DNA of 64,000 bases from Mantamonas sphyraenae STR306 (GCA_026936335.1 JAPMXV010000042.1:248001-312000), one strand, 5' to 3'. Shown: positions 36,201 to 63,771, counted from the stretch's first letter. Notes: generated by a model not told the origin, from the sequence alone. Numbers and translations are program-made.

Positions 36201-39200
36201 CACCTCGACCTCACCTACGGCACCAACCAGCTGCGCCTCACAGGCAACCCGCTCCAGGTCACTGTGGCTGGAAACACCGTCAACACAGGTGTGACCATGT
36301 TCACTGGCCAGCTGATGACGGTCGCCGTCACCTGGCGTGCCTCAGATGGCGCTACCCAAGTTCTTCGCGACGGCACCGCCGTGTGGACTGGAACCCTGAG
36401 TGCAGGCGCTTCCATCCCCAACGGCCTGCCTCTGATCATTGGAGGTTCAGGCTCCAACTCGCAATACGACGAGATTATTCTGTTGGACTACATCGAGTCG
36501 CAGCCCAACATCAACAACTGGCGCTTCTACGGTATCGGTGGTGGTGAACAGGGTGTGCGCGCTTACTACAAGGCCGACGACTGTGCAGGCAACACCATGC
36601 ACGACCTCGGACCGTTCAAGCAGCACCTCTCGGTCGCTGGAGGAACGCACAGCTGGTTGGCCGACAACGGCATCGCCCACACAATCCCGCTCACTGACCT
36701 TGGCATCGTTGCAAGCACCTTTAGCACGCCCGGCAACAACTTTGGCTTCATCAGCGATGGTGTTAACCAGGTGCTCGTGTTCGGCAACGGCATGAACGAC
36801 AAGCTGCTCACGTTCAACTGGGTGCACCGCAATGTGAGCTCGGAAGACACCGGTACGGCCGCGTTCACGCCTGCAGGCGGATACTATGCCACTGAGGAAG
36901 ATGCATTCGGTCACCAGCTGTGGACTGTCAACGGTCGCGCTTTTTACAAGTCGGCTGGATGGGACTTCCGCATGGCGGGTACCATCAAGAACCCGCAGGC
37001 TCTGGGCACCGACTACGCCTTTACAGCTGGCGTACAAAACACACAGTTCGGTCTTGATTTCTTCATTCGAGTCGACAACTCGGGCTACGTCTGGTTGGGT
37101 GACTGGGGCCACGACAACGGTGGCTACTTTGGTTTCGGCAACGATGACAACCTGGGTGTGCGCAAGACCAACATTCAGCTGACCACCGAATTGCCAAATG
37201 CGGGCAACACGAACGCCTATGTTGCACGAGGCATCCCAGCGTCGGATGGCGTCTCCGAGCTTGTGCCTGGCACAGCCCTTCGATTGCAAGGCAGCCTCGA
37301 CCAGCTGAACAGCAAGCTTGCTCAGCTGAGGTACACCCCGTACGCAAACGTGGACACGAACCAGACGATGCGCACTCGCATTACAGATGTCCACGGACAC
37401 TACACGGACAAGATCACCTCGCTGCGATCATCATCGCGGTGAACGACGCCCCTGTGCTGAGTGCTGTGTCGATGAGCTATGCCGGTGTGGAGGACACGGT
37501 GCTGGTGCTGCAGGATCAGCTGCAGCTGAGCGACGTGGACGCGTACGAGCTGCCCATGGAGCTCAACATCTCTGTCAGCCACGGTGGCTTCCAGCTGCCG
37601 GCCATGGCTTCGGTCACGGTGCAGACGCTGGCATCCACCAACGCCTCCATGCCTGCCCACTGGCGCTCCGTGCGTCTGCGGGGCACCCGAGCTGCGCTTA
37701 ACCGCACGCTGTCTCTCGTGAGCTACATGCCCGATCTGCACTTCTACAGCACCGATGCTCTGCAAGTGTCTGTCAACGATCTGGGCAACAGCGGCTGGGG
37801 CGGTGAACTGACCCACGCTCTGAACATCACGTTCAACGTGGCTCCGGTGAACGATGCTCCTATCTTTACGGTGCCCACCAGCTTCTACGCCATCTCGGAG
37901 GACACCCAGGCCACCATCGACGGCATCACGCTCGTGGATGTGGACACTGCGCCCAACGAGCAGCTTGGTTTCCGCTTGGTTGCACCGAACGGCCGTCTGT
38001 TCCTGAACACGAGCCAGGCAGGAGCTGCTGGCGCGTCGTTTGACCCTGTGTACGTCAATGGCGGTGCCGATGTGCGTGTCAACGCCACGCAGATGCAGTT
38101 TGCAGCGTTGATGCATGCCATGGTGTACCTGCCCAACCTGCACTTTGTGGACAACGAGACGGTGGCCATTTCGGCCACGGACTATGGTCGCTACGGAAGC
38201 GGAGGTGTGCAGTACGCCAACGCAGCGGTTGTGGTCAACATGCAGCGGGTCAACGATCTGCCGCGTCTGGACGCACGTCTTACGTACACCATCAAGGAGG
38301 ACGAGGTGTTGACGCTGAGCGCCATCAACGTGACCGACGTCGACGTGTTGCCCACAGACATCATGCGTCTCAACATCACAGTGGAGAAGGGCCGCCTTTC
38401 CATTGCCAACAACACATGGGCTTCCATTTTCGCCGGCCATGTGTCTCCGGGCGCCCCAACCGCTGACATCAACTTGTCGGGCAACATTTCGTCCATCCAG
38501 CGCGTGTTGGACGAGATTACGTACTACCCGTACCCGCACTTCAACGGCTTTGAGAACATCACCATGATCATTGACGATCTTGGCTCCGGTGGTCTCGTCG
38601 TCGTCGGCACACGACACGTGATTCAAATCCAGATTTACCTCATTCCACAGAATGACGCTCCGTTCATCACCACGGTGCACGGTCCGTTCTACGTGTCGGA
38701 GGACACCCAACTGGCAGTGTCCAATCTGGCCACTGTGTCGGATGTCGATGTCGTTGACGGCTTGCTGGAACTCAACCTCACCGTGCAGCACGGTCGCCTG
38801 TCCTTCAACACCACCTCTGGTCTGGTGTTCATGTATGGCACCAACCAGTCGGCACCCCATCTCTCTGTGCGTGGCCAGCTGACCTCGATCAACTCTGCCC
38901 TTGAGTCTGTGTCCTACATGCCGGACTTGCACTACTTTGGCAACGACACAATCGCCATGGACATCAACGATATCGGCAACAAGGGCGCTGGTCCCACAAG
39001 CGGTTTGTCTGACAGTGGCACGTGGCCCTCTTCATTGGATCGGTGAACGACAACCCTGTGTTTGTGAACCTCCCTGCATCGTACGTGGTGACGGAAGACA
39101 CACTGACGGCGCTGCCGGGCATCTCCATCTCGGATGTGGATGACGACACCGCTCGCCTCACCGTCGAGCTCACGGTCACCATGGGCAGCCTGTCGTCCAG

Positions 39201-42200
39201 CAACATGGCCGACGTGCCCGCCAACTTGACCTTTGAACAACGCCGATCCGGGAGCCATTGTGATCAACGGCACCTTTGTTGCGCTGAACCGCTTCCTGTC
39301 GGGTCTGCGATACATGCCCAAGCTTCACATCGACTACAACATGACACTGAGCATGCGTGTGATCGATGACGATGGCAACGCCACAGTGTCGTCGTCTGTG
39401 CTGCAGCTGGTGCCTGTGAACGACGCACCGCAACTGCGTCTCGTGCCCGCCGTCTTCTTGGCGGAAGACACCGTCGCCAACGTGTCTGGCTCGTTCATTG
39501 CCGATGTGGATGGCAAGCCGTGGCACCAAGTGACCATGAACATCTCATCGACCCATGGTCGCTTCCGCTCGTGCGGCCCGCCCTGCGCAGCGCTGACCAA
39601 CAACGCTACACATGACGACCTGCTGCGCACAGTTGTGTACAGTGGCAGCTACTCATGCATCAACAGCACCCTGGCGTGCTTGGTGTACGTGCCCGACATC
39701 CACTTCTTTGGCGCTGCCGAGATTCTGGTGTACGTGGACGACTTGGCCACGGGCGGCGCGCCCGATGTGCAGACCGATGCCGGAGTGATTGCAGTCAATG
39801 TGTCGTCTGTGAACGACAACCCGGTGTTTGTGAACGCCAGTGCATCGTATGCAGTGACGGAGGACACCCTGACGGCGCTGCCGGGCATTTCCATTTCCGA
39901 CGTGGACGACTACAACGTGGTGCCGTTCTTTGTGTCGCTGAACGTGTCGTCGGGTGTGGTGTCGAGTGCGGCCGACCTGACCAAGGGCAGTGGCTTCCTG
40001 ACACAGAGTCTGAACGGGGCTGGCGTGAGCGGTTTGCAGGTTTCCCCGTGGGCCAAGAGCTGCCACGCGTACAAGGCACAGGGTGCCAACACCACTGGTC
40101 TGTACGTGATCGATGTGGACGGCAACGGTCCGCTGGGCAACACTGTTGTGTACTGTGACATGGAAAGCGACGGCGGAGGTTGGGCGTCTGTGTTTTACGC
40201 AGACACGACGCCGGCCTGGGACACGGGCAGCAGCGTAGAGGTGCCGCTTGTGTTTGCCAACGACGACATGGACTCGACCATCCTGTGGGCCGACAACTCG
40301 GGTCAGGTGATGATCGACAACGGTGATGTGACCAGCACCAACGTGTTCCGTAGCGTTCGCCCTGATGGGACTGCGCTGACGACACAGCACGTGTTGCCAG
40401 GCACACGCCCCAGCTACATCGGCAACAACGCACGTCCTGTTGTGCACAACGGTATCAACCGTGTGTCGTGGCTGGACTGGCAGAACTCGCGCTTCGTGGT
40501 TGCACCCAAGGAAGGCTGTGCCTTTTACATGACGGCTGCCACAGCCAACGTGGCCATCCGCAACCCGATGAACACGTTCCCTGGCACTTCGTTGACGCTG
40601 TCGTTCTGGGCCCGTGTGCTGAACCCGAACCAGCTGTGGCTGGGCTACTCTATCCCGGCCACCGACAACGCACTGTACATCCATGCGGCTGCTAGCAACA
40701 CACTGACCGTGTTTGTTGCTGGTAACTCGGTGGCCACGTCCGCGATTCCGTTTGTGGCTGGTCAGTGGATGCACTTTGCACTGACGTGGAACTCTGCGGG
40801 TGGTGCAGTGCAGTTCTTTGCGAACGGTGCGCAGTACCTGAGCACGTCGGTGTCGAACGGTGCGACGATTGCCAACGGCGGTTCGTTTGTGTTGGGCTGT
40901 GACCAGGATGGTGTGGATGTTGTGAACGACAACTCGCAGTGCACAAACGGACAGTTTGACGAAGTGGCGCTGTTTGACCACGTCAAGTCGATTGGCGACA
41001 TCAACGCGTTCCGTTTCAACGGTCTGAAGGGCAACGAAGCGGGTCTGCGAGCGTACTGGAAGAGTGATGTGTGCACGGGTAACGTGCTGAAGGATCAGTC
41101 GGGCAACGCACAGGACATGACTGTGCGTGGCACGCCGACATGGCAGACGCCGGTGGGTGTGTCGGAGATTGTGACGTTTGCGGACCTTGGTCTGACCAGC
41201 GACGCTGGTCTTAGCACGTACGGTCAGAACTTTGTGATTGCCAGCGATGGTGTGAGTGAGTTTATGCTGCGCAGCAACGCGCAAGCCGACAGGCTGATCA
41301 GCATTGACTGGGAACATCGCAACGTGAGTTCGCGCGCCACTGGCACGACTGCGTTTTCGCCTGCTGGAGGGTACTTTGGCACCGAGCAGGATGCGTTTGG
41401 TCACCATCTGTGGACGGTGAACGGCCGTGTGATGTACACGTCATCGTCGTACAACCAGCGCATGGCGGGTACGCTGACCAACATCCAGGGCCAGGCGAAC
41501 GACTACTCGTTCCCCGGTGCAATTGACAACACCCAGTTTGGTTTGGATCTGTTCTTCCGCACCAACGCCCAGGGTTTCCTGTACTTTGGTGATTGGGGCC
41601 ACGACAACGGTGGCTACTTTGGGCAGGGCAACGACGACCGCATGGGCACACGCCGCACCAACATCCGCTTCACGGACTGGCTGACGACAACTGGCAACGT
41701 GAGCGTGACTTTCAGCCCGAAGGAGGGCATTGTGGTGGATCCTCTGGCGGAGATTGTGGTGTCGACTCGTGCGAACGGAGTGGACTTGCAAGGCGGCATG
41801 GTGGGTGTGAACAAGTACCTGTCAGGCCTGCAGTACATGCCTGGACTGCACGTGGACACGAACCAGACGCTGGATGTGCGTGTGATGGACGAAGACGGAC
41901 ACTACACTGAGCGTCGCCTTGTGATGCACATTGGTGCGGTGAACGACGCCCCCGTGCTGAATGCTGTGTCGATGAGCTATGCCGGTGTGGAGGACACGGT
42001 GCTGGTGCTGCAGGATCAGCTGCAGCTGAGCGACGTGGACGCGTACGAGCTGCCCATGGAGCTCAACATCTCTGTCAGCCACGGTGGCTTCCAGCTGCCG
42101 GCCATGGCTTCGGTCACGGTGCAGACGCTGGCATCCACCAACGCCTCCATGCCTGCCCACTGGCGCTCCGTGCGTCTGCGGGGCACCCGAGCTGCGCTTA

Positions 42201-45200
42201 ACCGCACGCTGTCTCTCGTGAGCTACATGCCCGATCTGCACTTCTACAGCACCGATGCTCTGCAAGTGTCTGTCAACGATCTGGGCAACAGCGGCTGGGG
42301 CGGTGAACTGACCCACGCTCTGAACATCACGTTCAACGTGGCTCCGGTGAACGATGCTCCTGTGTTTACGGTGCCCACCAGCTTCTACGCCATCTCTGAG
42401 GACACCCAGGCCACCATCGACGGCATCACGCTCGTGGATGTGGACACTGCGCCCAACGAGCAGCTTGGTTTCCGCTTGGTTGCACCGAACGGCCGTCTGT
42501 TCCTGAACACGAGCCAGGCAGGAGCTGCTGGCGCGTCGTTTGACCCTGTGTACGTCAATGGCGGTGCTGATGTGCGTGTCAACGCCACGCAGATGCAGTT
42601 TGCAGCGTTGATGCATGCCATGGTGTACCTGCCCAACCTGCACTTTGTGGACAACGAGACGGTGGCCATTTCGGCCACGGACTATGGTCGCTACGGAAGC
42701 GGAGGTGTACAGTACGCCAACGCAGCGGTTGTGGTCAACATGCAGCGGGTCAACGATCTGCCGCGTCTGGACGCACGTCTTACGTACACCATCAAGGAGG
42801 ACGAAGTGTTGACGCTGAGCGCCATCAACGTGACCGACGTCGACGTGTTGCCCACAGACATCATGCGTCTCAACATCACAGTTGCGCGTGGTAGTTTGTC
42901 ATTGGACATGTCTGCTGACGTGCAACTGGTTGACTACGTTCAGAGTGGTGACGCACAGACTGTGTCGTTTGCCATGAATCTTACCGCGGTGAACACGCTG
43001 CTGTCGCATGTCGTCTACACGCCTCGTCTGCAGTCGTTTGGATTTGACAACATCACTTTGATTATCGATGATATGGGTGCAGATGGCCTTCAAGTTTTGG
43101 GCACACGACACGTGATTCAAATCCAGATTTACATCATCCCGAAGAACGACGCTCCGTTCATCACCACGGTGCACGGTCCGTTCTACGTGTCGGAGGACAC
43201 CCAACTGGCAGTGTCCAATCTGGCCACTGTGTCGGATGTCGATGTCGTTGACGGCTTGCTGGAACTCAACCTCACCGTGCAGCACGGTCGCCTGTCCTTC
43301 AACACCACCTCTGGTCTGGTGTTCATGTATGGCACCAACCAATCGGCAACCCATCTCTCTGTGCGTGGCCAGCTGACCTCGATCAACTCTGCCCTTGAGT
43401 CTGTGTCCTACATGCCGGACTTGCACTACTTCGGCAACGACACAATCGCCTTGGGCGTTAACGATCTCGGCAACACTGGCTCCGGCAATGATACTGCACT
43501 GTCGACGAGCTATGCATGGACAATCCTGGTTGCTTCCGTGAACGACAACCCTGTGTTTGTGAACCTGCCTGCATCGTACGTGGTGACGGAAGACACAGTG
43601 ACGGCGCTGCCAGGCATCTCCATCTCGGATGTGGATGACGACACCGCTCGCCTCACCGTCGAGCTCACGGTCACCATGGGCAGCCTGTCGTCCAGCAACA
43701 TGGCCGACGTGCCCGCCAACTTGACCTTGAACAACGCCGATCCGGGAGCCATTGTGATCAACGGCACCTTTGTTGCGCTGAACCGCTTCCTGTCGGGTCT
43801 GCGATACATGCCCAAGCTTCACATCGACTACAACATGACACTGAGCATGCGCGTGATCGATGACGATGGCAACGCCACAGTGTCGTCGTCTGTGCTGCAG
43901 CTGGTGCCTGTGAACGACGCACCGCAACTGCGTCTCGTGCCCGCCGTCTTCTTGGCGGAAGACACAGTCGCTAACGTGTCTGGCTCGTTCATTGCCGATG
44001 TGGATGGCAAGCCGTGGCACCAAGTGACCATGAACATCTCATCGACCCATGGTCGCTTCCGCTCGTGCGGCCCGCCCTGCGCAGCGCTGACCAACAACGC
44101 TACACATGACGACCTGCTGCGCACAGTTGTGTACAGCGGCAGCTACTCGTGCATCAACAGCACCCTGGCGTGCTTGGTGTACGTGCCCGACATCCACTTC
44201 TTTGGCGCTGCCGAGATTCTGGTGTACGTGGACGACTTGGCCACGGGCGGCGCGCCCGATGTGCAGACCGATGCCGGAGTGATTGCAGTCAATGTGTCGT
44301 CTGTGAACGACAACCCGGTGTTTGTGAACGCCAGTGCATCGTATGCAGTGACGGAGGACACCCTGACGGCGCTGCCGGGCATTTCCATTTCCGACGTGGA
44401 CGACTACAACGTGGTGCCGTTCTTTGTGTCGCTGAACGTGTCGTCGGGTGTGGTGTCGAGTGCGGCCGACCTGACCAAGGGCAGTGGCTTCCTGACACAG
44501 AGTCTGAACGGGGCTGGCGTGAGCGGTTTGCAGGTTTCCCCGTGGGCCAAGAGCTGCCACGCGTACAAGGCACAGGGTGCCAACACCACTGGTCTTTACG
44601 TGATCGATGTGGACGGCAACGGTCCGCTGGGCAACACTGTTGTGTACTGTGACATGGAAAGCGACGGCGGAGGTTGGGCGTCTGTGTTTTACGCAGACAC
44701 GACGCCGGCCTGGGACACGGGCAGCAGCGTAGAGGTGCCGCTTGTGTTTGCCAACGACGACATGGACTCGACCATCCTGTGGGCCGACAACTCGGGTCAG
44801 GTGATGATCGACAACGGTGATGTGACCAGCACCAACGTGTTCCGTAGCGTTCGCCCTGATGGGACTGCGCTGACGACACAGCACGTGTTGCCAGGCACAC
44901 GCCCCAGCTACATCGGCAACAACGCACGTCCTGTTGTGCACAACGGTATCAACCGTGTGTCGTGGCTGGACTGGCAGAACTCGCGCTTCGTGGTTGCACC
45001 CAAGGAAGGCTGTGCCTTTTACATGACGGCTGCCACAGCCAACGTGGCCATCCGCAACCCGATGAACACGTTCCCTGGCACTTCGTTGACGCTGTCGTTC
45101 TGGGCCCGTGTGCTGAACCCGAACCAGCTGTGGCTGGGCTACTCTATCCCGGCCACCGACAACGCACTGTACATCCATGCGGCTGCTAGCAACACACTGA

Positions 45201-48200
45201 CCATTTTTGTTGCTGGTAACTCGGTGGCCACGTCCGCGATTCCGTTTGTGGCTGGTCAGTGGATGCACTTTGCACTGACGTGGAACTCTGCGGGTGGCGC
45301 AGTGCAGTTCTTTGCGAACGGTGCGCAGTACCTGAGCACGTCGGTGTCGAACGGTGCGACGATTGCCAACGGCGGTTCGTTTGTGTTGGGCTGTGACCAG
45401 GATGGTGTGGATGTTGTGAACGACAACTCGCAGTGCACAAACGGACAGTTTGACGAAGTGGCGCTGTTTGACCACGTCAAGTCGATTGGCGACATCAACG
45501 CGTTCCGTTTCAACGGTCTGAAGGGCAACGAAGCGGGTCTGCGAGCGTACTGGAAGAGTGATGTGTGCACGGGTAACGTGCTGAAGGATCAGTCGGGCAA
45601 CGCACAGGACATGACTGTGCGTGGCACGCCGACATGGCAGACGCCGGTGGGTGTGTCGGAGATTGTGACGTTTGCGGACCTTGGTCTGACCAGCGACGCT
45701 GGTCTTAGCACGTACAGTCAGAACTTTGTGATTGCCAGCGATGGTGTGAGTGAGTTTATGCTGCGCAGCAACGCGCAAGCCGACAGGCTGATCAGCATTG
45801 ACTGGGAACATCGCAACGTGAGTTCGCGCGCCACTGGCACGACTGCGTTTTCGCCTGCTGGAGGGTACTTTAGCACCGAGCAGGATGGGTTTGGTCACCA
45901 TCTGTGGACGGTGAACGGCCGTGTGATGTACACGTCATCGTCGTACAACCAGCGCATGGCGGGTACGCTGACCAACATCCAGGGCCAGGCGAACGACTAC
46001 TCGTTCCCCGGTGCAATTGACAACACCCAGTTTGGTTTGGATCTGTTCTTCCGCACCAACGCCCAGGGTTTCCTGTACTTTGGTGATTGGGGCCACGACA
46101 ACGGTGGCTACTTTGGGCAGGGCAACGACGACCGCATGGGCACACGCCGCACCAACATCCGCTTCACGGACTGGCTGACGACAACTGGCAACGTGAGCGT
46201 GACTTTCAGCCCGAAGGAGGGCATTGTGGTGGATCCTCTGGCGGAGATTGTGGTGTCGACTCGTGCGAACGGAGTGGACTTGCAAGGCGGCATGGTGGGT
46301 GTGAACAAGTACCTGTCAGGCCTGCAGTACATGCCTGGACTGCACGTGGACACGAACCAGACGCTGGATGTGCGTGTGATGGACGAAGACGGACACTACA
46401 CTGAGCGTCGCCTTGTGATGCACATTGGTGCGGTGAACGACGCCCCCGTGCTGAATGCTGTGTCGACGAGCTATGCCGGTGTGGAGGACACGGTGCTGGT
46501 GCTGCAGGATCAGCTGCAGCTGAGCGACGTGGACGCGTACGAGCTGCCCATGGAGCTCAACATCTCTGTCAGCCACGGTCACTTCCAGTTGCCTTTCCTT
46601 ACTGAGCTCGCACAGCAGATCACGATCATCCCGAAGGCACGTACATTCTTGAACTGCACCAACGCAACCTCATGCAGCGATGTTACCACGTGCAACAACG
46701 TCACGACTTGCCAGAACACCTCGGACTGCGCCAATGTGACGACTTGTCAAAACTCGACCTCGTGTCAGAACCTGACAACCTGTGAGAATGTGACTGCTTG
46801 CCAGAACATGACCACATGTCAGAACGTGACCGCGTGCCAGAACCTGACAACGTGCCAGAACGTCTCCACGCCTGTGACGACATGCTCGTCGGGTGCCAAC
46901 TCCACAGAGGGTCTCAACTGCACCATGATGTGGATCAACTGCACCAACGGCGTGTCGATGAACTGCACGGGCATGAACTGCACCAACATGACGATGCCGG
47001 GCGCCAACTGCACGGCTGTGCTTGTGTGCGTGAACGCGACGGCGAGCGCCAGCAATGGCAGCGAACCTGTGGTGAACTGCACGCAGACGTTTGTGGACAG
47101 CAGCAACTGCAGCACGAACCCAAGTTGCACTACTTTCACCAACTGCACAACTGGCCCTGTTTGCAACACGACTGCGAACTGCACGACCACACCCAGTTGC
47201 ACAACGACAACGAACTGCAGTACCGGCGTTGAATGCGTCATGGGTGTCAACTGCACTACCAGCCTGAGCTGCAACACGTCTCCCAATTGCACACACTACC
47301 CTGTGTGTGTGTGGATGCAGAACGGTACCTTGCCTGTGCCGGTGGCGACTCAGCCGGTGAACAGCTCCTTCCTGAACTGTACGCAGAAGGAGGTGTGTGT
47401 AGTGATGAACATTACTGCACCGCCTGCACAGAACACGACGTATCTGAACTGCAGCAATGTGGAGACGTGCCAGCCTGTGATGACATGCCAGAACGTCTCT
47501 ACGCCGGTGACGACCTGCTCGTCGGGTGCCAACTCCACAGAGGGTCTCAACTGCACCATGATGTGGATCAACTGCACCAACGGTGTGTCGATGAACTGCA
47601 CGGGCATGAACTGCACCAACATGACGATGCCGGGCGCCAACTGCACGGCTGTGCTTGTGTGCGTGAACGCGACGGCGAGCGCCAGCAATGGCAGCGAGCC
47701 TGTGGTGAACTGCACGCAGACGTTTGTGGACAGCAGCAACTGCAGCATGAGCAACAACTGCACTCAACAGTCCGTGTGTGTCTGGATGGTCAATGGTACT
47801 GCAACGTCGGCGCCTGTGATTCCTCCGGTGAACACAACGTACTTGAACTGCTCTGGAGTTGCTGAGGCGTGCCAGAACATGACAACGTGCCAGAACGTCT
47901 CTACGCCTGTGACGACTTGCTCGTCGGGTGCCAACTCCACAGAGGGTCTCAACTGCACCATGATGTGGATCAACTGCACCAACGGCGTGTCGATGAACTG
48001 CACGGGCATGAACTGCACCAACATGACGATGCCGGGCGCCAACTGCACGGCTGTGCTTGTGTGTGTGAACGCGACGGCGAGCGCCAGCAATGGCAGCGAA
48101 CCTGTGGTGAACTGCACGCAGACGTTTGTGGACAGCAGCAACTGCAGCAGCGGCACTGTGTGCACCCAGCAACCCGTGTGTGTTTGGATGGTCAACAACA

Positions 48201-51200
48201 CTGCGCAACAGGAGAGTCCTGCAGCGAACACGACCTACGTGAGTTGCAGTATGCAGCCCTCGTGCAAGTTCGTGGTCAACGTGACGGATCCCGTGCACGC
48301 ATGGTACCGCAGCCTGCGTTTGATCGGTACGCAAGCGGATCTGAACCGCACGTTGTCGCAGCTGCGCTATCTCGCTGATGAACACTTCTACACTCACGAC
48401 TCGTTGGAGATTTCTGTGTCTGATTTGGGCAACTCTGGCTTTGGCGTCCCTCTGGGAGATGCGATGAACATCACTCTGGACATTGTGGGTGTCAACGACC
48501 ACGTGGTGATCACCGTGCCGCACGGTGTGGTGACCACCGAAGACGTGCAGATGGACGTTCCTGTGAGCGTTTCGGATGTGGATCTCGTTTTCAACGAGCT
48601 CACAGTTATGGTGAATGTCACGCACGGTTCGCTGGCAATCAACAACACGGCAGGTCTGGTCTTTGTGGCCCCGTACAACACGAGCCAGTGGCAGCGTATG
48701 ATTGCGTTCAACGCCACATTGCAGCAGACCAACGCAGCATTGGCTACCTTGACTTTCCTGCCCGATCTTCATTTTGTGGGTGTCGCTACGGTCACCATTG
48801 TGGTCCGCGACAACACGCACATCTTCAGTACCGGTGAGTCGATCGTCACGCGGAACACCAGTATCCTGGTGACACCTGTGAATGATCGTGTGATTGCAGA
48901 GGTTGTTTCTGCGCTGCAGGTGAGCGAGGACACGTTGCTGCCTCTTCAGCCGCTGCAAATCTCGGACGTGGACGTGCTCCCGGATCTGGATCCGATCTAC
49001 ACGTACGCTCAAGTGCAGCATGGTTACCTGTTCCTGCAGCAACCGTGGGGCAATATGAGTGTGGTGCAACAGGGCGGCAAGGTGCTGCAGTTCACGGCCA
49101 CCTTGAATGAGCTCAACGCGCTGTTCAACCAGTCACGTGTCCAATACCTGGCCGAGAAGGACTATCATGGCGCGGATGTGGTCACTTGGACGTTCAGTGA
49201 CCAGGGGTACAACGGCTATGGTGACATCATCCCCTTCAACGCCACCACTGCACTCAATGTGAGTGCTGTGAATGACCCGCCCACGATTGCTGCCCCAAGC
49301 AACGTGACCTGCAATGAGGACATCGGGTTCAACTTGACCGCGTTTGCTGTGTCTGATATCGACAGTCTGGACACTCCCATCGAGCTGCACATTTCTGTGG
49401 AGCACGGTACTTTGTCTGGCTTCAATGTCAGCCGATACGCCTACCTTGTGAATGGTTCCATGCCTCTTCCGCAGAACACGACGTATCTGAACTGCAGCAA
49501 TGTGGAGACGTGCCAGCCTGTGATGACATGCCAGAACGTCTCTACGCCTGTGACGACTTGCTCGTCGGGTGCCAACTCCACAGAGGGTCTCAACTGCACC
49601 ATGATGTGGATCAACTGCACCAACGGTGTGTCGATGAACTGCACGGGCATGAACTGCACCAACATGACGATGCCGGGCGCCAACTGCACGGCTGTGCTTG
49701 TGTGCGTGAACGCGACGGCGAGCGCCAGCAATGGCAGCGAGCCTGTGGTGAACTGCACGCAGACGTTTGTGGACAGCAGCAACTGCAGCATGAGCAACAA
49801 CTGCACTCAACAGCCCGTGTGCGTCTGGATGGTCAACACGACGACGCCCGAGCCGCAGGGACCAGTTGTGGCTTCGCACTTGTGGGTCCAGACTGGAATG
49901 GTAAGCAACACGACGTGGCAGTTGAGCATGCGTGCTCCGGTGGCAATTCTCAACGAGACGCTGAAGAGCTTGCACTACCAGCCCAACATGCACTTCTATG
50001 GACCAGACCGCATGACGCTCATGATCGACGATCTCAAGAGCCATGGTGAGATCTTGGAGCCGTGGACTGCTACACACTACGTGGACATTGATGTGGTATC
50101 GATCAACGACGCGCCTGTGATCACGGCCCCGGCCGCTCTGAGCATGAACGAAGAGATCCCGGTTGCTTTCAGCATCAGCGTGAGCGATGTCGATTCGTAT
50201 GAATTGCCGATGAACGTGTCGCTGGAGACGAAGCATGGCAACCTCGTTCTGCAGCTGGGCAACCTGACGGCTGCTGAGCTGGGTGTGTCCAATGCAACGA
50301 TGACCATGCTGCGCAGCAAGAACTACCTGAAGCACGCTGTGTTGCCACAGTCCAAGATCAACATGATCCTGGGTGTGGTGACATACCAGCCGGACGTGCA
50401 CTACTTTGGTGCCGACGTGGTGAACATCACGATCGACGACCTTGGTAACTCGGGTCTGGGCCGCCACGTGGTTGAGCACGACGTGCTGCTCTCTGTTTAC
50501 AGCATTAATGATCACCCGATGTTGCGCAACGTGCCCTTGGCCCTTCAGGTGGATGAAGATGTGCCCCTGCACATCGACGGTATCTGGATGACCGATGTGG
50601 ACGTGGAAGACCGCCTCATGACGGTGCGCATGTCGAGCACATTTGGCAACCTGACACTGGACACGACTTTGGGTCTGAACTTCACTGAGGGCACCGTGAA
50701 TGGTCTCACCTCGCTGGTGTTCACTTGTGCGCTGCCCAACTGCTCTCAGGCCATCGGAAACTTCACCTACACGCGCGTGCCGCACTGGTACGGCAAGGAT
50801 CAGATTGTGTTGCAGGTGAACGACAACGACGTGGCTGGCGTCCATTCGCTGGGTGGTGCTCTGGTAGACAACGCGCTCATCAACGTGACCGTGGTGCCGC
50901 AGAATGATGCGCCTCGTATCTGGGTGGCCACGTCGTACATGGCTGTGTCTGAGGACACGGAGTTGACCATTACGGGTGTTCATGTCACAGACATCGACGT
51001 TTACGCCTTGCCTATGGAACTGAACCTGACGGTCTACCATGGTCGCATCTACCTCCCGCTGCCTGTCATCGCACAAGAGGCCAACTCCAACATGACCCAG
51101 GGCATGAACATGACAGAAGGTATGGGCATGATGCAGGGTATGATGAACATGACCCAGACGGTGAACGGCACCATGAATGTCACCGCGAGCGGAAACAACG

Positions 51201-54200
51201 CAACTGCCAGTGCCAACACGACTGTGTGTTCGTGGGTGTCGTCCAACATCACTGTGATGAGCAATGCCACCGCCCAAATGGTATGCAACGAGTCTCAGGT
51301 TTGTATGCCGGCCAACGCCACTATGGTGTGCGCTTGGAACGCTACCCTCAACGCTTCGCAGTGTGCCATGGCGGACAGTTCGCTTGTTTGCAACAACGTG
51401 ACCACTTGCGTGCCTGTGGTTGGACCGATGGTCTCCCACAACATCACGGTGTGGCAGTATGTGTGCTTGCAGAACAACACGAACAACACGGCTCAGGCCG
51501 AGCAGCCAGCTGCGCCTGTCAACCCTCTGTACACGCCTGTGCGTCGCGACTTGACTCTGCGTGGTACGGTGACAGACTTGAACGTGGCCATCTCGCGCAT
51601 CTTGTATGTGCCTGACGCGAACTACTACGGCGTGGACCGTTTGGATGTGTCCGTGTCCGATTTGGGCAACTCGGGCGTCGGTCAGCCGCTGCAGGACGCC
51701 AAGTATGTTGATTTGAACGTGACGTGGGTCAACGACGCTCCTGTGTTGGCCGACACGTCCATGTTCAGTTCGTTGCGCAAGCTCAAGGAGGAGATTCCTT
51801 CGCTCATCGAAGGAATCACTCTGACTGACGTGGACTCGTCGTTCTCCAACATGACGATGAACATCACGGTGGCGCACGGTTACATCTCGTTCAATTTCAC
51901 GGTACTGCTGAACCGCACGCTTGTGTCTGTGGACAACAGCAGTGCTATGGTGTTCAACACCACGGGCAACATTACCGTGGGTGGTTTCGATATGCCCAAG
52001 GCCGATCTGGTACGTGTTGCATCGCAGTACGCCAACTACGGGCGCCCGCGCACGTACGGCCGTGGCTTTTCGCTGCGAGCTCCTCTGTTGGACCTGCAGA
52101 TCATGCTCTCTGTGCTGCAATACCAGCCTTTCTGGCCGTACCACGGCGCCGACAACATGACCATCTTTGTTCATGACGAGGGCTATCGCGGCCATGGTGG
52201 TGTCCTGTCGGACACGCTGCACCTTCCCATGACGGTACTGTGGTGCGACGGCAACATCACGTCGGGTCTTATCAAGGACAGCTGTTTTGTGTGTGGTGGC
52301 CACAACGCCACGTGCATCGGTTGCGACAACGTGCCCTGGAGCGGACTGGTCTACGACGCGTGCGGTGTCTGCAACGGAGACAACAGCACATGCAAGGGTT
52401 GTGATGGTGTCCCCAACTCGGGCAAGGTGTACGACGTGTGCGGTGTTTGCGGTGGCCCCGGTCGCGATCAGTGCAACGTGTGTGGTGGAGATGACAGCAC
52501 GTGCAAGGGTTGCGATGGTATCCCCAACTCGGGTCTCAAGTACGACGTGTGTGGCGCTTGCGGTGGCGACAACTCGACGTGCAGGGGTTGCGATGGTATC
52601 CCCAACTCGGGCAAGACCAACGACGTGTGCGGTATTTGCGGAGGCAACGGCTTCACGTGCATTGGTTGTGATGGTGTGCCAAACTCTGGCAAGATCTACG
52701 ACACGTGCGGTGTTTGCGGTGGCAACACCGACTGCACCGGTTGCGATGGCAAGGGTGGTGCCTACGATGGCTGCGGTGTCTGCAACGGCGACAACAGCAC
52801 TTGTGCCGGTTGTGATGGCCAGCCGTTTTCGGGCAAGAAGTATGATCCGTGTGGTGTGTGTGGAGGCGACGGTACGTCGTGCGCAGGTTGTGACGGCGTG
52901 CCCAACTCTGGCAAGAAGTTTGACCAGTGCTTGGTGTGTGACGGTGACAACAGCACGTGTCCTTTCATCACCTCCATCTATCCGAACAGTGGTCTGGTGG
53001 CCGGTGGCGAGACGGTCACGGTGTACGGCCGCAACTTCCGAAACGATGCCCTGTTGCGCTGCCGCTTTGGTAGCACGCTTGTTGCGGCGCAGTACCGAAT
53101 TTTGCTGCCCAGCAATGTGGGTGTGATTTTGTGTCCGACGCCGCCTTCGCCTGTGAACGCGCCCAACGGTGTGGGCTACGTTTCTTTGGAAATCACTGTG
53201 TTCAAGAGCATCTTTACGCAGAACGGCTACGACTTTGGCTACCACCAGCCCCCTCCTGTGGTGGTGCAGTCGCGCATGCGCAATGATGCTGCGTCGATCA
53301 CGGTCACGTTCGACAAGGACACGAACCGTGCCAACTTTGTTGGTTACAAGTCTTGCGACACTCTGTTCAAGCCTACCACGCTGGCGCTGATGGGAGTCAA
53401 CCCCGTGTGCTACTTTGAGAGTGCAACATCGCTGGTGGCATTGCTGCAGGCGGGTACGGTGTTGGATCCTGGCATGATTGTGGAGGTGCAGAACAACTCG
53501 ATTCGTCGCCTGGATGCCCAGTCCAGCGATTCGCGCCTGTATGCCCCTGCGCGCGGATCCGCTCCGGTGCTGTATCCGCTGAATCCCATCCGGCCGGTAG
53601 CTGTCATCAGTGCGCCGCCTGTCATTGGATACTGTGATGGCGTCACGCTGACCACGGCTGCATCGTACGGATCCGGTGCGCGCAACATGCGCTACACATG
53701 GAACGTGACGGCGGTGGGCAACAGTGCCAATACGGCCTATCTCAACTCGATCACTGCTCTGCGCACAGAGTTGGCATCGCGTGGCAACACGCAGTCGACC
53801 CTGACTGTGGCGTCCAGCTTCATCGTGCCGGGCTTTACGTACGAATTTGCGCTGGTGGTGACAAACTTCCTCAACGTCACGGGAGATGCCACGACCAAGC
53901 AGGTTACCAAGGACGTGCTGCCGCTGCCTTCGGTGTCCATCCAGGGTAGCACGCAAATTGACTTTTTGCGTCCGCAGTGGAATGTCATCGAGGCCACGGG
54001 CTCGTTGTCTGTCTGTTCGGTGGAGCGCACACTGGCCTTCCAGTGGGTGCAGCTGTCCGGTCCTACGATTCTGGACAAGGCCGCTACGACCACAGAGCGT
54101 CGTTTGTACTTCCCTCCAGATGTTCTCGCGGTTGGCGAGAAGTACTCGTTCCGCGTGACCGGTACGGTGACAGAAAACCCAACCCTGTTTGCCGCGGCCA

Positions 54201-57200: not shown

Positions 57201-60200
57201 CCACGACCACCCCGCTGTGTGGTACGGCCACCGTGCGCCTTGTGGTGCCGGCAAGTCCTGTGGAGGCGCGCATCTTTGGTGGTGGTGCCTCGGTGGGTGT
57301 GGCGGACGCTCTGGTGCTGGACGGCAGCATTTCATTGGATCCGGATGATTTGCAGAACGTGACGCCATTCAAGTACTTGTGGCGCTGCGAGTTTGAGACG
57401 ACGCCGACTGTGTTTGAGGGTGTGACGACGCGCAACTTTTTGCCGTGCACAAACCTGAACACAAAGACGCTGTTGACGAGCACGCAGGCACAGATGGTGA
57501 TTCCTGCGGGTGCTTTGAGTGCCAATGAGAAGCTGAACCTGGACAAGAACGTGTACACGTTCAAGCTGACGGTGGAGAAGGGTGGACGCGAGTCGAACGC
57601 GACCACCAAGATCACCGTGTTGCCTGGTTCGCTGCCGATTGTGCAGGTGAAGCCGCAAGCGAGCAGGAAGCACAACCCGAACGACAAGTTGAACCTGGAG
57701 GTGGAGATTGCCAACGAGCGCCCGTCGACGACGTACGACTACACGTGGCGTGTGATCCCCAACGACCAGCTCAATGTGTCCAACCCGAACGTGGTGGCCA
57801 CAAGCGTCAAGAACAAGAACTTTGTGATTCGAGCCAACCGACTTTCGCCGGGTGCCTCGTACACATTTGAGGTTCGTGTGTTGGACGTGCTCAGTGGCAC
57901 GCAGGGTAGCTCGCGAGTGACGATTCTGGTCAACTCGCCGCCCACGGCCGGTGGCTGTTCGGTGACGCCGACCACCGGTACGCAGCTGCAGACCAAGTTC
58001 CAGGTCAGCAGTTCGGGCTGGGTGGACGATCCCGACGATATGCCGCTGCAGTACTCCTTCCGCTACGTGGATGGCAACGGAGCCGAGGTGGCCATGTCGC
58101 CGTTCAGTGAAGCCAACAAGGCTGAGACGGTGTTGCCCGAAGGTTTGGGCACGAACAAGGTCCTGGAGCTGCGTTGCTACGTGTCTGACTTCTTTGGCGG
58201 TCAGGCATTCAGCACAACGCAGGTGACGGTGGAGCCCATCAAGATTGACGCCGGTGGCGATGTGGCCGACGTGGCCGACTCGTTCGTCAACGGAGGCATG
58301 GCCGATGCCCTGTCCAGTGGTGACACGGCCGCGGCAGGTCAGTACATCAACTCGATTTCGTCGCTGCTGAACGCTCCTGCGGAAGAGCCGGCCAATGGCG
58401 GTGGTGGCGGCGGCGGCGGCGGAAACCCGCAGCCCAAGCCGACGCCGACGGCAGAAGAGACGGCGAAGAAGGAGGCAGTGCGCGAAAAGTTGCTGGGAGC
58501 CCTGGATTCTGTGTTGGCGTCGACGGTGTTGACGAGCAACGAGGATGTGGAGCGCAACAGCAAGAGTGTGTCGCTTGTGTTGTCATCGACGACCCTTACG
58601 GCCAAGGCGCAAACCGACGGTGCGGGCCTGGTCAAGTCGCTTGTGACGGCCACCGAGTCGACGGGTCTGGGCAAGTCTGGCGACAGCATGCTGAGCACCA
58701 TCGACAACATTGTGGTGTCGTCGCCGATTGGCAAGTCGGCAGCACCGGGTGCCAGCACGGCCGAGTCGGGCAAGGATCTGTCGCAGGACTTGCAAGGCAC
58801 GGTGAGCCGCCTGTCGGATTCGTCGCTGGGCGACAAGGTGTGTGGTGAGGAGCCGTTTGCGCTGGGTTCGAGCAACCTTGCGCTGCAGTCGCGCAAGCAG
58901 TTCCCGGACAAGGTGGGAGGCAGCGCGGTGTCACCGGCAGCCAAGGGCAAGACGGGTGCGCAGGTGCCGTCGTTTGGACTGCCCACGGGTCTGTTTGGCA
59001 GCAACGCGCCGGCTTGCATGGACTCGCATGGCAAGGCGCAGGAGCGCAACCCGTTCTCGTTCGATCCGGAGTCGTCCAAGGTGCAGTCGCCCGTGACGGG
59101 TCTGACCTTCAAGAACGGCAAGGTGGTGCAGGCTGTGTTTGGCCTGGACACACCGATCGACATTTTCATTCCGCGCCAAGACCCGAACGGCTTCTACGCG
59201 GCACTGAACAACCCGAATGCAACCGTGCCCAGCAACTTCACGCTGCCTCGCGCGTCGTGCGAGTATTGGAATGAGGAGCTGGAGGTGTGGTCGGACGACG
59301 GTTGCAAGGTGAAGAACAACTGGCTGAATGGCACGCTGTGTGCATGCACACATCTTACAGACTTTGCCTCGCTGGCCGCGGACTCTGCGCCGACGGTGAA
59401 CGTGGTGGATCCTGTGGGAGACGCCAAGCTGCTGGCAGGACTGGCGGACAACCCGTTCTCGGCCATTGTGCTGGGCATTGTGACGGGTCTCTTCCTGATC
59501 CTGGTGTTCCTGGGCTGGAGGCAGGACAAGATCGAGCGGGAAATGCTGCTGGGTCTGCGCCCTGTGCCGGAAAAGAGCCGCTGGCAGGCGTGGCTGGAGA
59601 AGTGCCAGAGCAAGGGACCGCAGGAGCGAAGGAAGGCGAGGCGCCGGGCTTCTTCAAGCGCTACGTGGACAGCGTGTCGAACAACTTCAAGACGAACCAC
59701 GGCTGGTACTCGATCTACGCGAGGGATCCAAAGGACCCGATCACGCGTCCCAAGTACATCACCATCCTGTTCTCGGTGATCATGTCGGAGCTGACGGTGG
59801 TGGCGCTGTTCTACTCGGATGGCGAGTCGTCGATGGGTGCCGAGTTTGTGACGGGTATTCTGGCGTCGTTGATCCTGAGTCCGCTGGGCTTTGCCATTGC
59901 GTACATGTTCAGCGCCACGCGACAGCCGCTTGACATCCAAGCGGAGCGCATCAAGGCTGGCCTGGCTCCGGCAGACACCAAGAAGGAGTTTGAGGAGCTG
60001 GAGCTGGACGAACTCGGCAACAAGAAGGCCAAGGCCGAGGTGGAAGGAGGCACGACTGTTGCGCCGAGCGGACCGAGCGGCCCGGAGGAGGTGGAAATGA
60101 GCGAATTGGGCGGCGAGGAACAGGCAGCAGCCGGTGGCAGGCGTCGCCGACGCAAGAAGGCGACAGCCGAGAACGAGGATGGCGAAGAGGAGGATGACGA

Positions 60201-61671: not shown

Positions 61672-61848
61672 TTCGTTGATTGCTGAAGAAGAAGAAATGG
61701 GGAAAGTGAGCAAGAAGAGCGACGTTTGGTTGTGAGTGATGCGATGATGAGCAGAGAAATGGAAAGGAAACGCGTTCGCTCCCCCCAAAAAAAACAACAA
61801 CAACAAGAAGGAAAGCCAAGATGGATCAAATCCTGTCGAATAGTTGGC

Positions 61849-63771
61849 TCAAAAATTGTATTGGCCCTCATCGCCATGCTGGCTGTTGAGCATCTCCTGG
61901 GCTTCGACGGCCGCAACGGCCTGTTCTTCGTCCTGTTGCTGCTTGAAGAGTTGGTTGGCCTTGAGATCCGAGTAGACGGAGAACAAGAGGTGGAGACTCT
62001 CGATCATCTTGCTATGCACAGGGACGTCCATGATGCCGCACACAATGCGTGCATAGGTGTCCAGGTCGACGTCCATGTCGGCCGAAGGCAACTCCACACC
62101 CGACTTGAGCAGCTCCTCAAACTCGGGGGGCCAGATCTGCATCAAATCGTCGATGGAAGGCATGTTCTTTGTGTAGTGCACCGTGGCCTGTGGGGTGACG
62201 CGGTGCAGCTTGCTGATGTCCTTGGCCCATTTGTCGATGAGGTGGCCGCTCTTGTCTGCGCGTTCGATGGTGGGCACAGACACGGGTGCCTCCACCGTGT
62301 CCTTGCTGATCTGTCGCAGGCGCAACTGAAGCACCGCCGGGTCGGACTGGATGGCCGCGGGCTCGTCAAGCACGGTCAACCCCAGTGCATCCGCCTCTCC
62401 GTCCGGCCGCGGGATCTTGATAAAGGCGTCGATGTCACCCACAGCGGGAATGTAGTCCGGAATAAATGGACGCAGCTTCGTTTCGATTTCCACAGTCTGC
62501 GGCTTGTACCGCGTGATGTACTGGAAGAGTTCCTTGATCTCGTGTGCCACATCCAGGTCCTTGTAGTCGTCCGGATTGTATCCAGCCTGCCAACCGCCCG
62601 AGGCCCCCACTGTGTGCATGGCCGAGTAGCCCTCGTTGCCGTTGCCATGGTCTGCGTCCTCCTCATCCTCCTCATCCTCCTCTTCTTCCTCCTCTTCATC
62701 CTCTTCGTCGTCCTCCTCGGCTTCGTCCGTGCTATCGTCACTCCATTGGTCCTGTGGCTGCTGCGGCGACTCTTTGGGTCCGCCTGCCAGCCCTGCGGCC
62801 GCTCCGTGGTCAAACTGGGCCGGCGGCGCTTCTGTGGGCATGGTTGCTGCCAATCCTCCCGAACGCCCAAACTGCCCCTGCATGCCTGTGCGCCCGTTGT
62901 GGTCCTCCTCATTATCATCATCTTCTTCGTCCTCTTCCTCTTCATCCTCGTCTGTGCTGCCGTAGCTGTGCTGGCTGCGCTCGGGCGTCTTGGGCGGTGT
63001 GTCTGCGTGGGGCGGGCAAGGCGTTTTGGCGCGCACCGCGGATACAAAGTCGTGTGAGTGTGTGTGGTGTGTGCAATATGTGGAGGCAGTGTGCGGGTGG
63101 GTGGTGATGGGTGATGGATGATGGTGATGGATGGGTGCCCCGATGAACGGAAAAGGGTGCTTGGTTGTTCAACAACTAGGGGGGGTTGCCGGCTGCTGTG
63201 ATCTCCAAACTTACCGATTCGCTGGCTTGCCGCGAGGGTTTGCTGGCCCTGTGTGAATCCGACGTCACCGTCGCCGTCGTCAGAACCATCTACAGAGATG
63301 GCCTCATCGTACATCTCGTTCTCCACCATCTGGGACTGTGTGCAGTGATGCAGCGAGCGTGCGTGAGCGCGAGGTGGTGAAAGGCGCGGTGGAAAAACGG
63401 TCGCGCCGGTACTCTGGCCAAACGGCGAACCACAGCCGTGCGCACAGGCGGCCGGGGACACGGATCACACAGGGTAGGGAGCCCCAGGACAAGGAAACGT
63501 ACGCGAGTGGTGCCCATCATGGAGTTGGACGTTGCGCCCAGGTTTGTGGTGCCGCCAAAGGTGTTGGTTGTCGCGCCAAAAGTACTCGTGCCGCCTGTGG
63601 TGCGTGTCGTGCCACCCATGCCGTAGTTGAACTCGTCCTCCGAGTCCGAGTCATTGTCTCCGCCCGTTCGTTGGTTTTTCTGCAGCATCGACATGTAGTC
63701 CTCGTTGTCCGAGCTGTCCGAATCCGAAAAGTCGCCTCCCGCCGGTGGCGCCTCGCTGGGCATGGACATGT
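61849..63771 (-). CDS. IFT46: Intraflagellar transport protein 46; exons 63771-63503, 63335-63215, 63002-61849 (may extend 5' beyond the window)
   Basis: YNPDDYKDLDV..EIKELFQYITRYKPQ..E.ETKLRPFIPDYIPAVGDIDAFIKIPRPD....LGLTVLDEP...QSDP and MPSIDDLMQIWP, with an acidic N-terminus. Donors GTACGT and GTAAGT and CAG acceptors are in phase. Confidence 0.95.

Follow-up and report, generated by a model that had tools for sequence, protein, structure and literature searches.

Among described structures, those closest to the Cys-rich modules reported here are the cystine-ladder beta-hairpin peptides, the bovine ultralong CDR H3 and the beetle antifreeze proteins, while polycystin-1 and the sea-urchin REJ receptors resemble the host protein only. 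Theta-defensins, tachyplesin, protegrin and gomesin are cationic, free-standing peptides of about 18 residues, in which two or three disulfide rungs lie one or two residues apart. In the bovine ultralong CDR H3 a variable knob is carried on a roughly fixed stalk that has no disulfide rungs, and such cow-antibody knobs have already been used in protein design as stalk-and-knob scaffolds. The disulfides of the bovine loop are described in three reports as stabilising the knob (PMC5994613, PMC12371982, PMC8602281). In the beetle antifreeze coil, residues C2, S5, C8 and A11 point inward and a local disulfide joins C2 to C8 within the coil (PMC8038014).

Here we present a computational analysis of a stretch of 64,000 nucleotides (the window) from Mantamonas sphyraenae STR306 (GCA_026936335.1 JAPMXV010000042.1:248001-312000), in which one giant gene carries modules whose Cys residues are mirrored about a turn. 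The organism belongs to the CRuMs, which branch near the base of Amorphea and whose proteins are to our knowledge almost unstudied.

Results

All modules of the window were read in the + strand frame of a single open frame at 39233-59779, which encodes a giant surface protein of 6848 aa and probably extends upstream via + strand ORFs from 21271 on. Pfam matches within this frame comprise cadherin-like repeats (Cadherin_4, 4e-31), nested fibrinogen and pentraxin domains (Pentaxin, 6e-34), TIG, two REJ (4.9e-143) and a GPS motif (8.8e-13) followed by a TM segment, the latter being a hydrophobic stretch read from the host translation; the protein thus holds the REJ and GPS with adjoining TM that define a polycystin-1-like receptor. 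The first-pass annotation had named a cadherin-like domain as the host of the modules, and the Cadherin_4 profile agrees, scoring 107.7 and 73.3 bits on the host repeats against a curated cut-off of 25.1, with the inserts placed in one loop of the domain. The most heavily loaded domain begins with an N-terminal half at 46430-46654 (+), which runs up to the first ladder Cys and is the final copy of a 4.5-kb super-repeat ending at about this point, and resumes with its C-terminal half at 48266-48500 (+). Modules A to C with two mini modules, module D, and a further insert at 51227-51466 occupy the same loop in three different cadherin-like domains, the insertion point aligning between the conserved V-x-H-G strand and the R-G-T...L-N segment of the Cadherin_4 host repeat. 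Both in this gene and in a second giant gene described below, the module takes the place of the turn between two host strands.

Module A consists of an outbound arm of 12 Cys with all gaps x5 (46655-46855), a distal part in which an x9 neck, an 8-Cys core and a second x9 neck follow one another (46856-47107), and a return arm that again has 12 Cys and only x5 gaps (47108-47308), an arrangement that had been noticed earlier and is exact to the residue. Its core (46883-47080) has the gaps 11-6-7-4-9-5-16, and most of the core Cys stand within N-C-T sequons. The shorter copies reported earlier, with three Cys out and three back, are module B (47450-47779, core 47516-47713), module C (47849-48181, core 47918-48115) and module D (49493-49822), the last being near-identical to B and alone in its cadherin-like domain; each reads 3 Cys, x9, 8-Cys core, x9, 3 Cys, and the sole irregularity among them is the first gap of module C, an x6 that faces an x5 on the return side. 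The minimal versions with one Cys on either side correspond to two C-x5-C mini modules at 47378-47398 and 48245-48265, the first of which is bordered by the same hydrophobic residues that stand at the base of a full module. All of these lie on the + strand, their counts out and back being 12/12, 3/3 (n=3) and 1/1 (n=2) with necks of 9/9, and the total number of Cys is even in every module.

Two unrelated modules display the same property, which is new beyond the earlier observation. The insert at 51227-51466 (+) contains eight Cys with the perfectly palindromic gaps 18-5-8-10-8-5-18. The other, termed the C1 module, is found in the second giant gene (G000:C1:61455-62030), where a host repeat and an 8-Cys core that both differ from those of the window carry the pattern 7, x8, core, x8, 2, x13, 2, x8, core, x8, 7. 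Its 71-aa unit 2/core/2 has been duplicated in tandem (94% identity), and if the 2/2 branches are paired locally a trunk of five rungs is left, in which each side has a single x6 gap, the outbound one (aa 842-849) standing opposite the returning one (aa 990-997); a mirrored x6 gap at the matching rung fits a Y-shaped ladder. Mirror symmetry of the Cys about the turn is therefore seen in 12/12, 3/3, 7/7 and 2/2, in the necks (9/9 and 8/8) and in 18-5-8-10-8-5-18, the x6/x5 pair of module C being the exception. The match in Cys number between outbound and return arms, claimed earlier, applies to all the window modules and to these two independent ones as well.

The protein sequence of the core is identical in all four copies (modules A-D), and the six codons at which their DNA differs, across 86 codons, are all synonymous, hence the core is under purifying selection. 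The adjoining arms vary in protein sequence, those of B and C differing around the same core, so that adjustable arms around a constant core, as proposed in the first-pass annotation, are borne out in both length and sequence. In the outbound arm of module A the unit approximates C-Q-N-V-T-T, almost every unit contains an N-x-T sequon, and the DNA repeats in tandem with a period of 18/36 bp (72-75% matches). The return arm follows a 12-residue super-period, in which alternate Cys stand in N-C-T/S and Pro occupies Cys+4. Identity at lag 12 exceeds that at lag 6 in both arms of this module. In the x5 ladder segments all seven Pro residues are an even number of positions away from the Cys before them, although these are not fully independent because six of them share one repeat position of the return arms; even offsets from Cys in a two-stranded ribbon are the non-hydrogen-bonded positions. 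Sequon density reaches 10-16 per 100 aa in the modules versus 1.2-1.9 elsewhere (about 6-8 times the rest of the protein), and 40 of the 41 N-C-S/T triplets of the ORF fall inside modules. From these sequons, the arms are predicted to be N-glycosylated.

Separate short-read unitigs span each 12-Cys arm (46550-46903 and 47085-47458) with 0-2 substitutions and no indels in three runs, all from one study and possibly the source data of the assembly itself; with both arms covered in this manner, long-read assembly is not the source of the 12/12 count. Inverted DNA repeats were ruled out as the source of the symmetry, since a Cys codon read on the opposite strand no longer specifies Cys. When the order of gaps was shuffled, a naive null, mirror matches equal to or above those observed arose with p = 6e-4 for module A, 0.035 for B, 0.01 for the insert at 51227-51466 and 5e-6 for the C1 module. 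As modules B, C and D arose by recent duplication, they are to be taken as a single observation, and the independent mirror-symmetric cases accordingly number three or four, not seven.

Structure prediction, which had been suggested earlier for a host domain together with its insert, gave a divided answer. For the insert at 51227-51466, AlphaFold placed strand pairs at 4-18/75-89, 24-26/66-69, 32-34/59-62 and 40-44/49-52, all mirrored about i+j=93, which is the register of Cys 7-86, 26-67, 32-61 and 41-52; pLDDT was 82-83 at the ends and 42-59 inside. The model thus predicts a mirrored hairpin with a nested Cys register for the palindromic insert, and Foldseek of this model against the PDB returned no match at E <= 0.001. 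Module A, folded by AlphaFold2 without an alignment, gave no usable structure (mean pLDDT 40), and a two-chain fold of its outbound arm against its return arm gave no answer (score 0.00) and is evidence neither way.

Searches for relatives were made at several levels. With module B as query, phmmer found 0 matches in a set of 1.84 billion protein representatives. The ESM Atlas, queried with module B and the C1 module, and the JGI metagenome contigs were likewise blank, and no Pfam family matched modules A, B or C1 at E up to 10. Among PDB sequences, module A retrieved only a compositionally biased match to 1EZG and the C1 module only a chance match to a NELL1 EGF domain (E 0.73). Protein and profile searches of the genome with the cores, the arms and the palindromic insert located modules in the window gene and the C1 gene only; the other genome matches were off-frame C-G-V-C-G-G repeats, Arg/Gly-rich noise and furin/TNFR-like repeats, and were rejected. 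In thirty 3-kb loci around other Cadherin_4 matches, PSI/EGF-type Cys regions were found and no ladder modules. Modules without a detectable homolog would constitute a lineage-specific invention.

Discussion

We consider that the modules probably form nested cross-strand disulfide ladders, giving rise to glycan-coated hairpin stalks, a connectivity that we infer from the Cys spacing. Each module would be a self-contained hairpin that interrupts a repeat domain of a giant extracellular protein at a loop, the chain leading out, turning in the Cys-rich distal part and returning antiparallel. Outbound Cys k would bond with return Cys n+1-k and thereby build nested rungs, one per six residues, and the N-x-S/T sequons along both arms imply that such a ribbon would be coated with sugar. 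Beta-strand geometry suggests a rod of about 22 nm for 12 rungs and of a few nm for three, and the distance to which the constant distal part is projected would be set by arm length, which could serve a spacing or binding role. As a module would be closed by its own disulfides, it could be duplicated in tandem, shortened to one base rung as in the minis, or copied within another ladder, which would yield the Y form. The zipped antiparallel stalks envisaged in the first-pass annotation thus find support in the Cys counts, the odd arms, the mirrored gaps and the model of the palindromic insert, while the low-confidence fold of module A is uninformative. The constancy of the earlier "knob" is clear from the identical cores. 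On either side of a tip of four residues its gaps fall into the pairs 11/16, 6/5 and 7/9, and it may be no more than the irregular tip of the same hairpin.

The main rival reading, already named as the alternative in the first-pass annotation and in our view unlikely, is that the arms are narrow beta-solenoids of the beetle-antifreeze type, whose 12-residue coils are bisected by local i/i+6 disulfides, with two solenoids standing side by side and matched in length only for the chain to return to the host loop. Any rod-out, rod-back design would likewise favour equal arms, the minis are also plain local C-x5-C loops and show such a loop to be viable, and the Cys at every sixth residue together with the 12-residue super-period of both arms (lag-12 above lag-6 identity) recall antifreeze coils, as does the likeness of the return-arm unit N-C-T-x-x-P-x-C to T-C-T-x-S-x-N-C. 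The sole phmmer match of module A among PDB sequences, to the Tenebrio antifreeze protein 1EZG over 51 gap-free residues of the outbound arm (E 0.012), points the same way, but it has a composition bias of 24 bits and depends on Cys, Thr and Asn, and the Pfam search up to E 10 yielded no family. Moreover, the outbound unit C-Q-N-V-T-T lacks the T-C-T of the TmAFP consensus T-C-T-x-S-x-N-C-x-x-A-x. The small Ser or Ala expected at Cys+3 (PMC8038014) is replaced by V, L or M in 13/20 outbound units, unlike the small inward antifreeze residues, and the return arms are mixed (13/21 G, S or T). Local pairing requires an even number of Cys per helix, whereas arms of three or seven leave one Cys unpaired, so that i,i+6 pairs alone cannot satisfy all Cys. 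The earlier alternative retains a low probability, the outbound arm having its weak, biased match, and falls short on three features of the antifreeze class. Six coils would moreover measure only about 3 nm, in which case tandem modules on Pro-rich linkers need no matched arms, and the mirrored x6 gap of the C1 trunk and the 18-5-8-10-8-5-18 insert would go unexplained; nested pairing fits these and the odd arms better than local pairing does.

It is still less probable that the arms are flexible, mucin-like glycosylated linkers whose Cys enter intermolecular or mixed disulfides and cross-link the surface coat without any defined hairpin. The low complexity of the T/N/S/Q-rich arms, their very high sequon density, the low AlphaFold confidence on module A and the giant adhesin-like host would all suit such linkers, yet they would leave the equal Cys counts, equal necks and palindromic gaps of three unrelated modules unaccounted for, and the even Cys total of every module and the purifying selection on the core also speak against them. 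That the symmetry is a structurally meaningless by-product of repeat expansion or assembly is largely refuted and the least credible of the three: the gene is indeed rich in recent duplications and the outbound arm is an 18/36-bp tandem repeat, but both arms are confirmed by short-read unitigs, modules that lack tandem repeats are symmetric as well, the shuffle tests give p from 0.01 down to 5e-6, and the two arms show no sequence relationship, which means that a single duplication cannot have produced both.

Should the nested ladder be real, a long rigid spacer would be obtained from a two-stranded ribbon that needs just periodic disulfides and glycans, its length being set by repeat number and branching being tolerated, which is of relevance to protein design. 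It would also bear on the way in which repeat expansions on two separate segments are kept matched, because selection would act against unpaired Cys. We know of no precedent for a two-stranded ribbon of 66 residues. In any case, the modules add to the cell-surface biology of CRuMs protists. We hold the chances to be evenly balanced that they represent an undescribed architecture, namely a genetically length-tunable, glycan-coated two-stranded beta-ribbon with up to 12-16 nested rungs and about 20 nm in length, built as a portable, self-closing insert that can be duplicated, truncated or branched and that serves to present a conserved Met/Asn-rich tip at some distance from the loops of giant adhesion receptors in an early-branching eukaryote.

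Comparison with known systems

As regards the host protein, REJ domains, a GPS just before the TM segment and a long modular ectodomain are shared with polycystin-1 and the sea-urchin REJ receptors, whereas the ectodomain here is made of bacterial-type cadherin-like repeats with nested domains in their loop; Cys-ladder inserts are, as far as we know, not a feature of that family. With the beetle antifreeze protein of Tenebrio molitor (1EZG) the arms have in common a Cys at every sixth residue, a Thr/Asn-rich 12-residue period and the weak outbound match, and they depart from it in the bulky residues at inward-equivalent positions, the odd Cys counts of some arms and the overall mirror symmetry.

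The bovine ultralong CDR H3, to which the modules had been compared, is likened to them by a long two-stranded stalk, a small disulfide-rich unit and a position in a beta-sandwich loop (PMC5994613, PMC12371982, PMC8602281). This holds as an analogy and not as membership, for the host is a Cadherin_4-type repeat of a protist REJ/GPS protein rather than an antibody variable domain with its heavy-chain CDR3; in addition, the distal part is constant here while stalk length varies, and the variation is germline, not somatic. With theta-defensins, tachyplesin, protegrin and gomesin, a class covered by two reviews, the modules would share antiparallel strands and parallel cross-strand disulfides, and they do share Cys mirrored about the turn (PMC13001179, PMC10096437). 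The ladder proposed here would nevertheless run to as many as 12 rungs, or to 16 should it extend through the core, at one per six residues, in modules that are lined with sequons, embedded in a giant protein, in one case apparently branched, and without sequence relation to those peptides.

Cysteine spacing of the modules

Every cysteine of the open frame 39233-59779 (+ strand, 6848 codons), within which all modules of the window lie, was listed with its gap to the next cysteine (xN denotes N residues between successive Cys). The arrangement described in the first-pass annotation for 46655-47308 (module A, + strand) was found to be exact: eleven x5 gaps, a neck of 9, an 8-Cys core with gaps 11-6-7-4-9-5-16, a second neck of 9 and eleven x5 gaps, i.e. 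12 + 8 + 12 Cys. The shorter copies and minimal versions that it listed were likewise recovered on the + strand, namely modules B (47450-47779), C (47849-48181) and D (49493-49822), each with 3 + 8 + 3 Cys and the necks and core of module A, and two C-x5-C inserts ("minis", 47378-47398 and 48245-48265), in which a single Cys pair and the hydrophobic base are all that is left. The sole spacing irregularity among B, C and D is the x6 first gap of C. Unitigs built from short reads, in three runs belonging to one study, span the two 12-Cys arms completely (46550-46903; 47085-47458) with 0-2 substitutions and zero indels; two return-arm substitutions (47209 and 47263) occupy third codon positions. 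The core is covered about 4x as deeply as the sequence on either side, which fits the collapse of four copies.

The four copies of core plus necks (86 codons) encode identical protein and differ at six codons, all synonymously, an outcome with a probability of the order of 1e-3 to 1e-4 if roughly one random change in three or four is synonymous. The arm protein sequence adjoining the cores differs among B/D, C and A, and the arms keep their Cys number despite this drift. The claim of a constant core presented on differing arms is thereby borne out; judged from the coding sequence, the modules are real coding sequence under selection, and the distal part is conserved while the arms drift.

Mirror symmetry in unrelated modules

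The 8 Cys of an unrelated insert in the loop of another cadherin-like repeat (51227-51466, + strand) are spaced 18-5-8-10-8-5-18, a fully palindromic series. The insert is preceded at 51080-51226 by low-complexity sequence rich in Met, Gln, Gly and Asn in which N-M-T sequons (N-x-S/T) recur, and the conserved core of modules A-D is likewise unusually Met-rich. Genome search with the out arm of module A retrieved one other place, on contig C1, in an open frame of 6502 codons (58986-78491). Its host repeat differs from that of the window, being an unannotated unit of ~76 aa, and SBBP propeller repeats follow further downstream. The module there (C1:61455-62030, aa 824-1015) takes the place of the turn between two host strands, as the inserts of the cadherin-like host do, and it runs 7 Cys, x8, core, x8, 2 Cys, x13, 2 Cys, x8, core, x8, 7 Cys, with arm gaps of 5-5-5-6-6-5 outbound and 5-5-6-5-5-5 on return. 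The 8-Cys core is unlike that of the window (gaps 1-0-7-5-4-2-1), and the stretch "2 Cys, core, 2 Cys" (71 aa) occurs twice in tandem, the copies being 94% identical. Were each duplicate to pair internally, five Cys would be left on the outbound side and five on the return side, and the single outbound x6 gap (842-849) would face the single return x6 gap (990-997); by its spacing, the module would read as a five-rung trunk forking into two two-rung branches. When the order of the gaps was shuffled, as many mirror matches as observed arose with p = 6e-4 for module A, 0.035 for B, 0.01 for the palindromic insert and 5e-6 for the C1 module. This null is a simple one, and B, C and D amount to a single observation. 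Even so, three unrelated module types follow one mirror rule.

Host gene, insertion site and distribution

Pfam domains of the 39233-59779 frame comprise Cadherin_4 repeats (bacterial-type cadherin-like), fibrinogen-C, pentraxin/LamG, TIG, two REJ and GPS, with a hydrophobic segment right after the GPS motif. Long + strand ORFs begin at 21271, which suggests that the gene extends beyond this frame. Past the GPS motif and TM segment the frame becomes an Arg/Ser/Thr-rich tail up to the stop (59600-59779), suggesting an intron and further exons downstream (region of ORFs 59287-61671 and 61726-63057). Tandem 4.5-kb super-repeats (window 37436-46729; starts 37436, 41936 and 46430; copies 91-99% identical) each contain cadherin-like repeats and a nested fibrinogen/pentraxin unit, and the final copy stops at about the loop where the Cys modules start. 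Between the cadherin-like and TIG/REJ parts (52250-52950) lie ~10 tandem C-G-V-C-G-G-D-N-S-T-C-x-G-C-D-G-x-P-N-S-G units, with a weak ADAMTS_CR_3 match alone; a similar array occurs elsewhere on contig C42, near 6700, the window being C42:248001-312000.

Alignment of cadherin-like repeats with and without inserts placed every window insert between a conserved V-x-H-G strand and an R-G-T...L-N segment, a position at which plain repeats have ~20 residues. In one repeat, A, mini, B, C and mini follow one another with Pro-rich linkers between them; module D is the sole insert of a second repeat, a third has the unrelated Cys insert, and the same loop of other repeats contains fibrinogen and pentraxin domains. 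Other repeats again (39530-39680 and 44030-44180) have in this loop a short C-x3-C element, C-G-P-P-C, which may be a further minimal turn closed by a disulfide.

The genome searched (25,061,354 bases, 78 contigs, GC ~59%) matches in these figures the FALCON assembly published for Mantamonas sphyraenae (25.06 Mb in 78 primary contigs at 59.19% GC; PMC10492846). Searches of it with cores, arms, an arm profile and the palindromic insert yielded just two genes, those of the window and of C1. Other giant open frames, on contigs C44, C27, C29, C32, C28, C61, C4, C13 and C56, hold at least 150 further Cadherin_4 matches, one such frame on C44 reaching 9721 codons; several of the matches are preceded by PSI and EGF-like Cys-rich regions. 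In ~95 kb around other cadherin-like repeats, the Cys regions were of PSI/EGF type only, without ladder modules. No relative was found among 1.84 billion protein representatives (query module B), in the ESM Atlas (queries module B and the C1 module) or in metagenome contigs, and no Pfam family matched the ladder modules at E up to 10.

Probable disulfide pairing

Between nested and local pairing we decide by inference, from the logic of the spacing and one model of moderate confidence, and the nested ladder, the most economical reading, is probable. A single rule, by which outbound Cys k would bond return Cys n+1-k, accommodates every arm size, be it 12, 7, 3, 2 or 1 Cys; were pairing local (i,i+6), 3-Cys and 7-Cys arms would have one Cys over. 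Irregular gaps are mirrored too (necks 9/9 and 8/8; C1 trunk x6/x6; palindromic insert 18/18, 5/5 and 8/8). AlphaFold2 on the palindromic insert alone (mean pLDDT 59; 82-83 at both ends) placed strands at 4-18/75-89, 24-26/66-69, 32-34/59-62 and 40-44/49-52, mirrored about i+j=93, in the register of Cys 7-86, 26-67, 32-61 and 41-52. The minis are as expected if the outermost rung closed a module. Even-offset positions have free NH in a two-stranded ribbon whose Cys occupy non-hydrogen-bonded sites; all Pro in x5 ladder segments (7/7) lie at even offset from the preceding Cys, which argues weakly for nesting because six of them fall on a single repeat position of the return arms. Against the proposed cross-strand zipping, AlphaFold on module A reached a pLDDT of 40 and module C sets x6 opposite x5. 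Moreover, any out-and-back rod would benefit from equal arms, the minis are equally plain local loops, and a super-period of 12 residues runs through either arm (identity 0.56 and 0.33 at lag 12 vs 0.42 and 0.30 at lag 6).

The alternative offered in the first-pass annotation, a beta-helix with a Cys every six residues as in beetle antifreeze proteins, concerns mainly module A and appears unlikely. The single phmmer match against all PDB sequences is Tenebrio antifreeze protein 1EZG, gap-free over 51 out-arm residues at E 0.012, with 24 bits of bias and with matched residues that are nearly all Cys, Thr and Asn. In the antifreeze 12-residue coil, T-C-T-x-S-x-N-C-x-x-A-x, C2, S5, C8 and A11 point inward and C2-C8 form the disulfide (PMC8038014), whereas here 13 of the 20 out-arm units have V, L or M at Cys+3, T-C-T is absent, odd arm Cys counts do not fit, and Pfam, as stated, is silent.

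Predicted glycosylation, distal part and relation to known systems

The modules have 10-16 sequons per 100 aa, compared with 1.9 for the remainder of the window ORF and 1.2 for the remainder of the C1 protein, and 40 of the 41 N-C-S/T triplets of the window ORF lie inside modules. The heavy N-glycosylation claimed earlier stands as sequon density, the glycans themselves being predicted. Out-arm sequon Asn sits at Cys+2, on the same face as Cys, and return-arm Asn directly before every second Cys (Cys-1), on the opposite face, so that in ribbon form both faces would carry glycans. Core gaps pair around a short tip in both genes (11/16, 6/5 and 7/9 about 4 residues in the window; 1/1, 0/2 and 7/4 about 5 residues in C1), and the distal part may thus carry the hairpin on in irregular form rather than make a separate globule. 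As conjecture, on a gliding cell that feeds on bacteria the modules could act as a spacer, present a conserved tip or form a glycan brush resistant to proteases.

Overall, the closest known ideas are the cystine ladder of short beta-hairpin peptides, the stalk and knob of the cow ultralong CDR H3 and the beetle antifreeze coil; the modules belong to none of the three.
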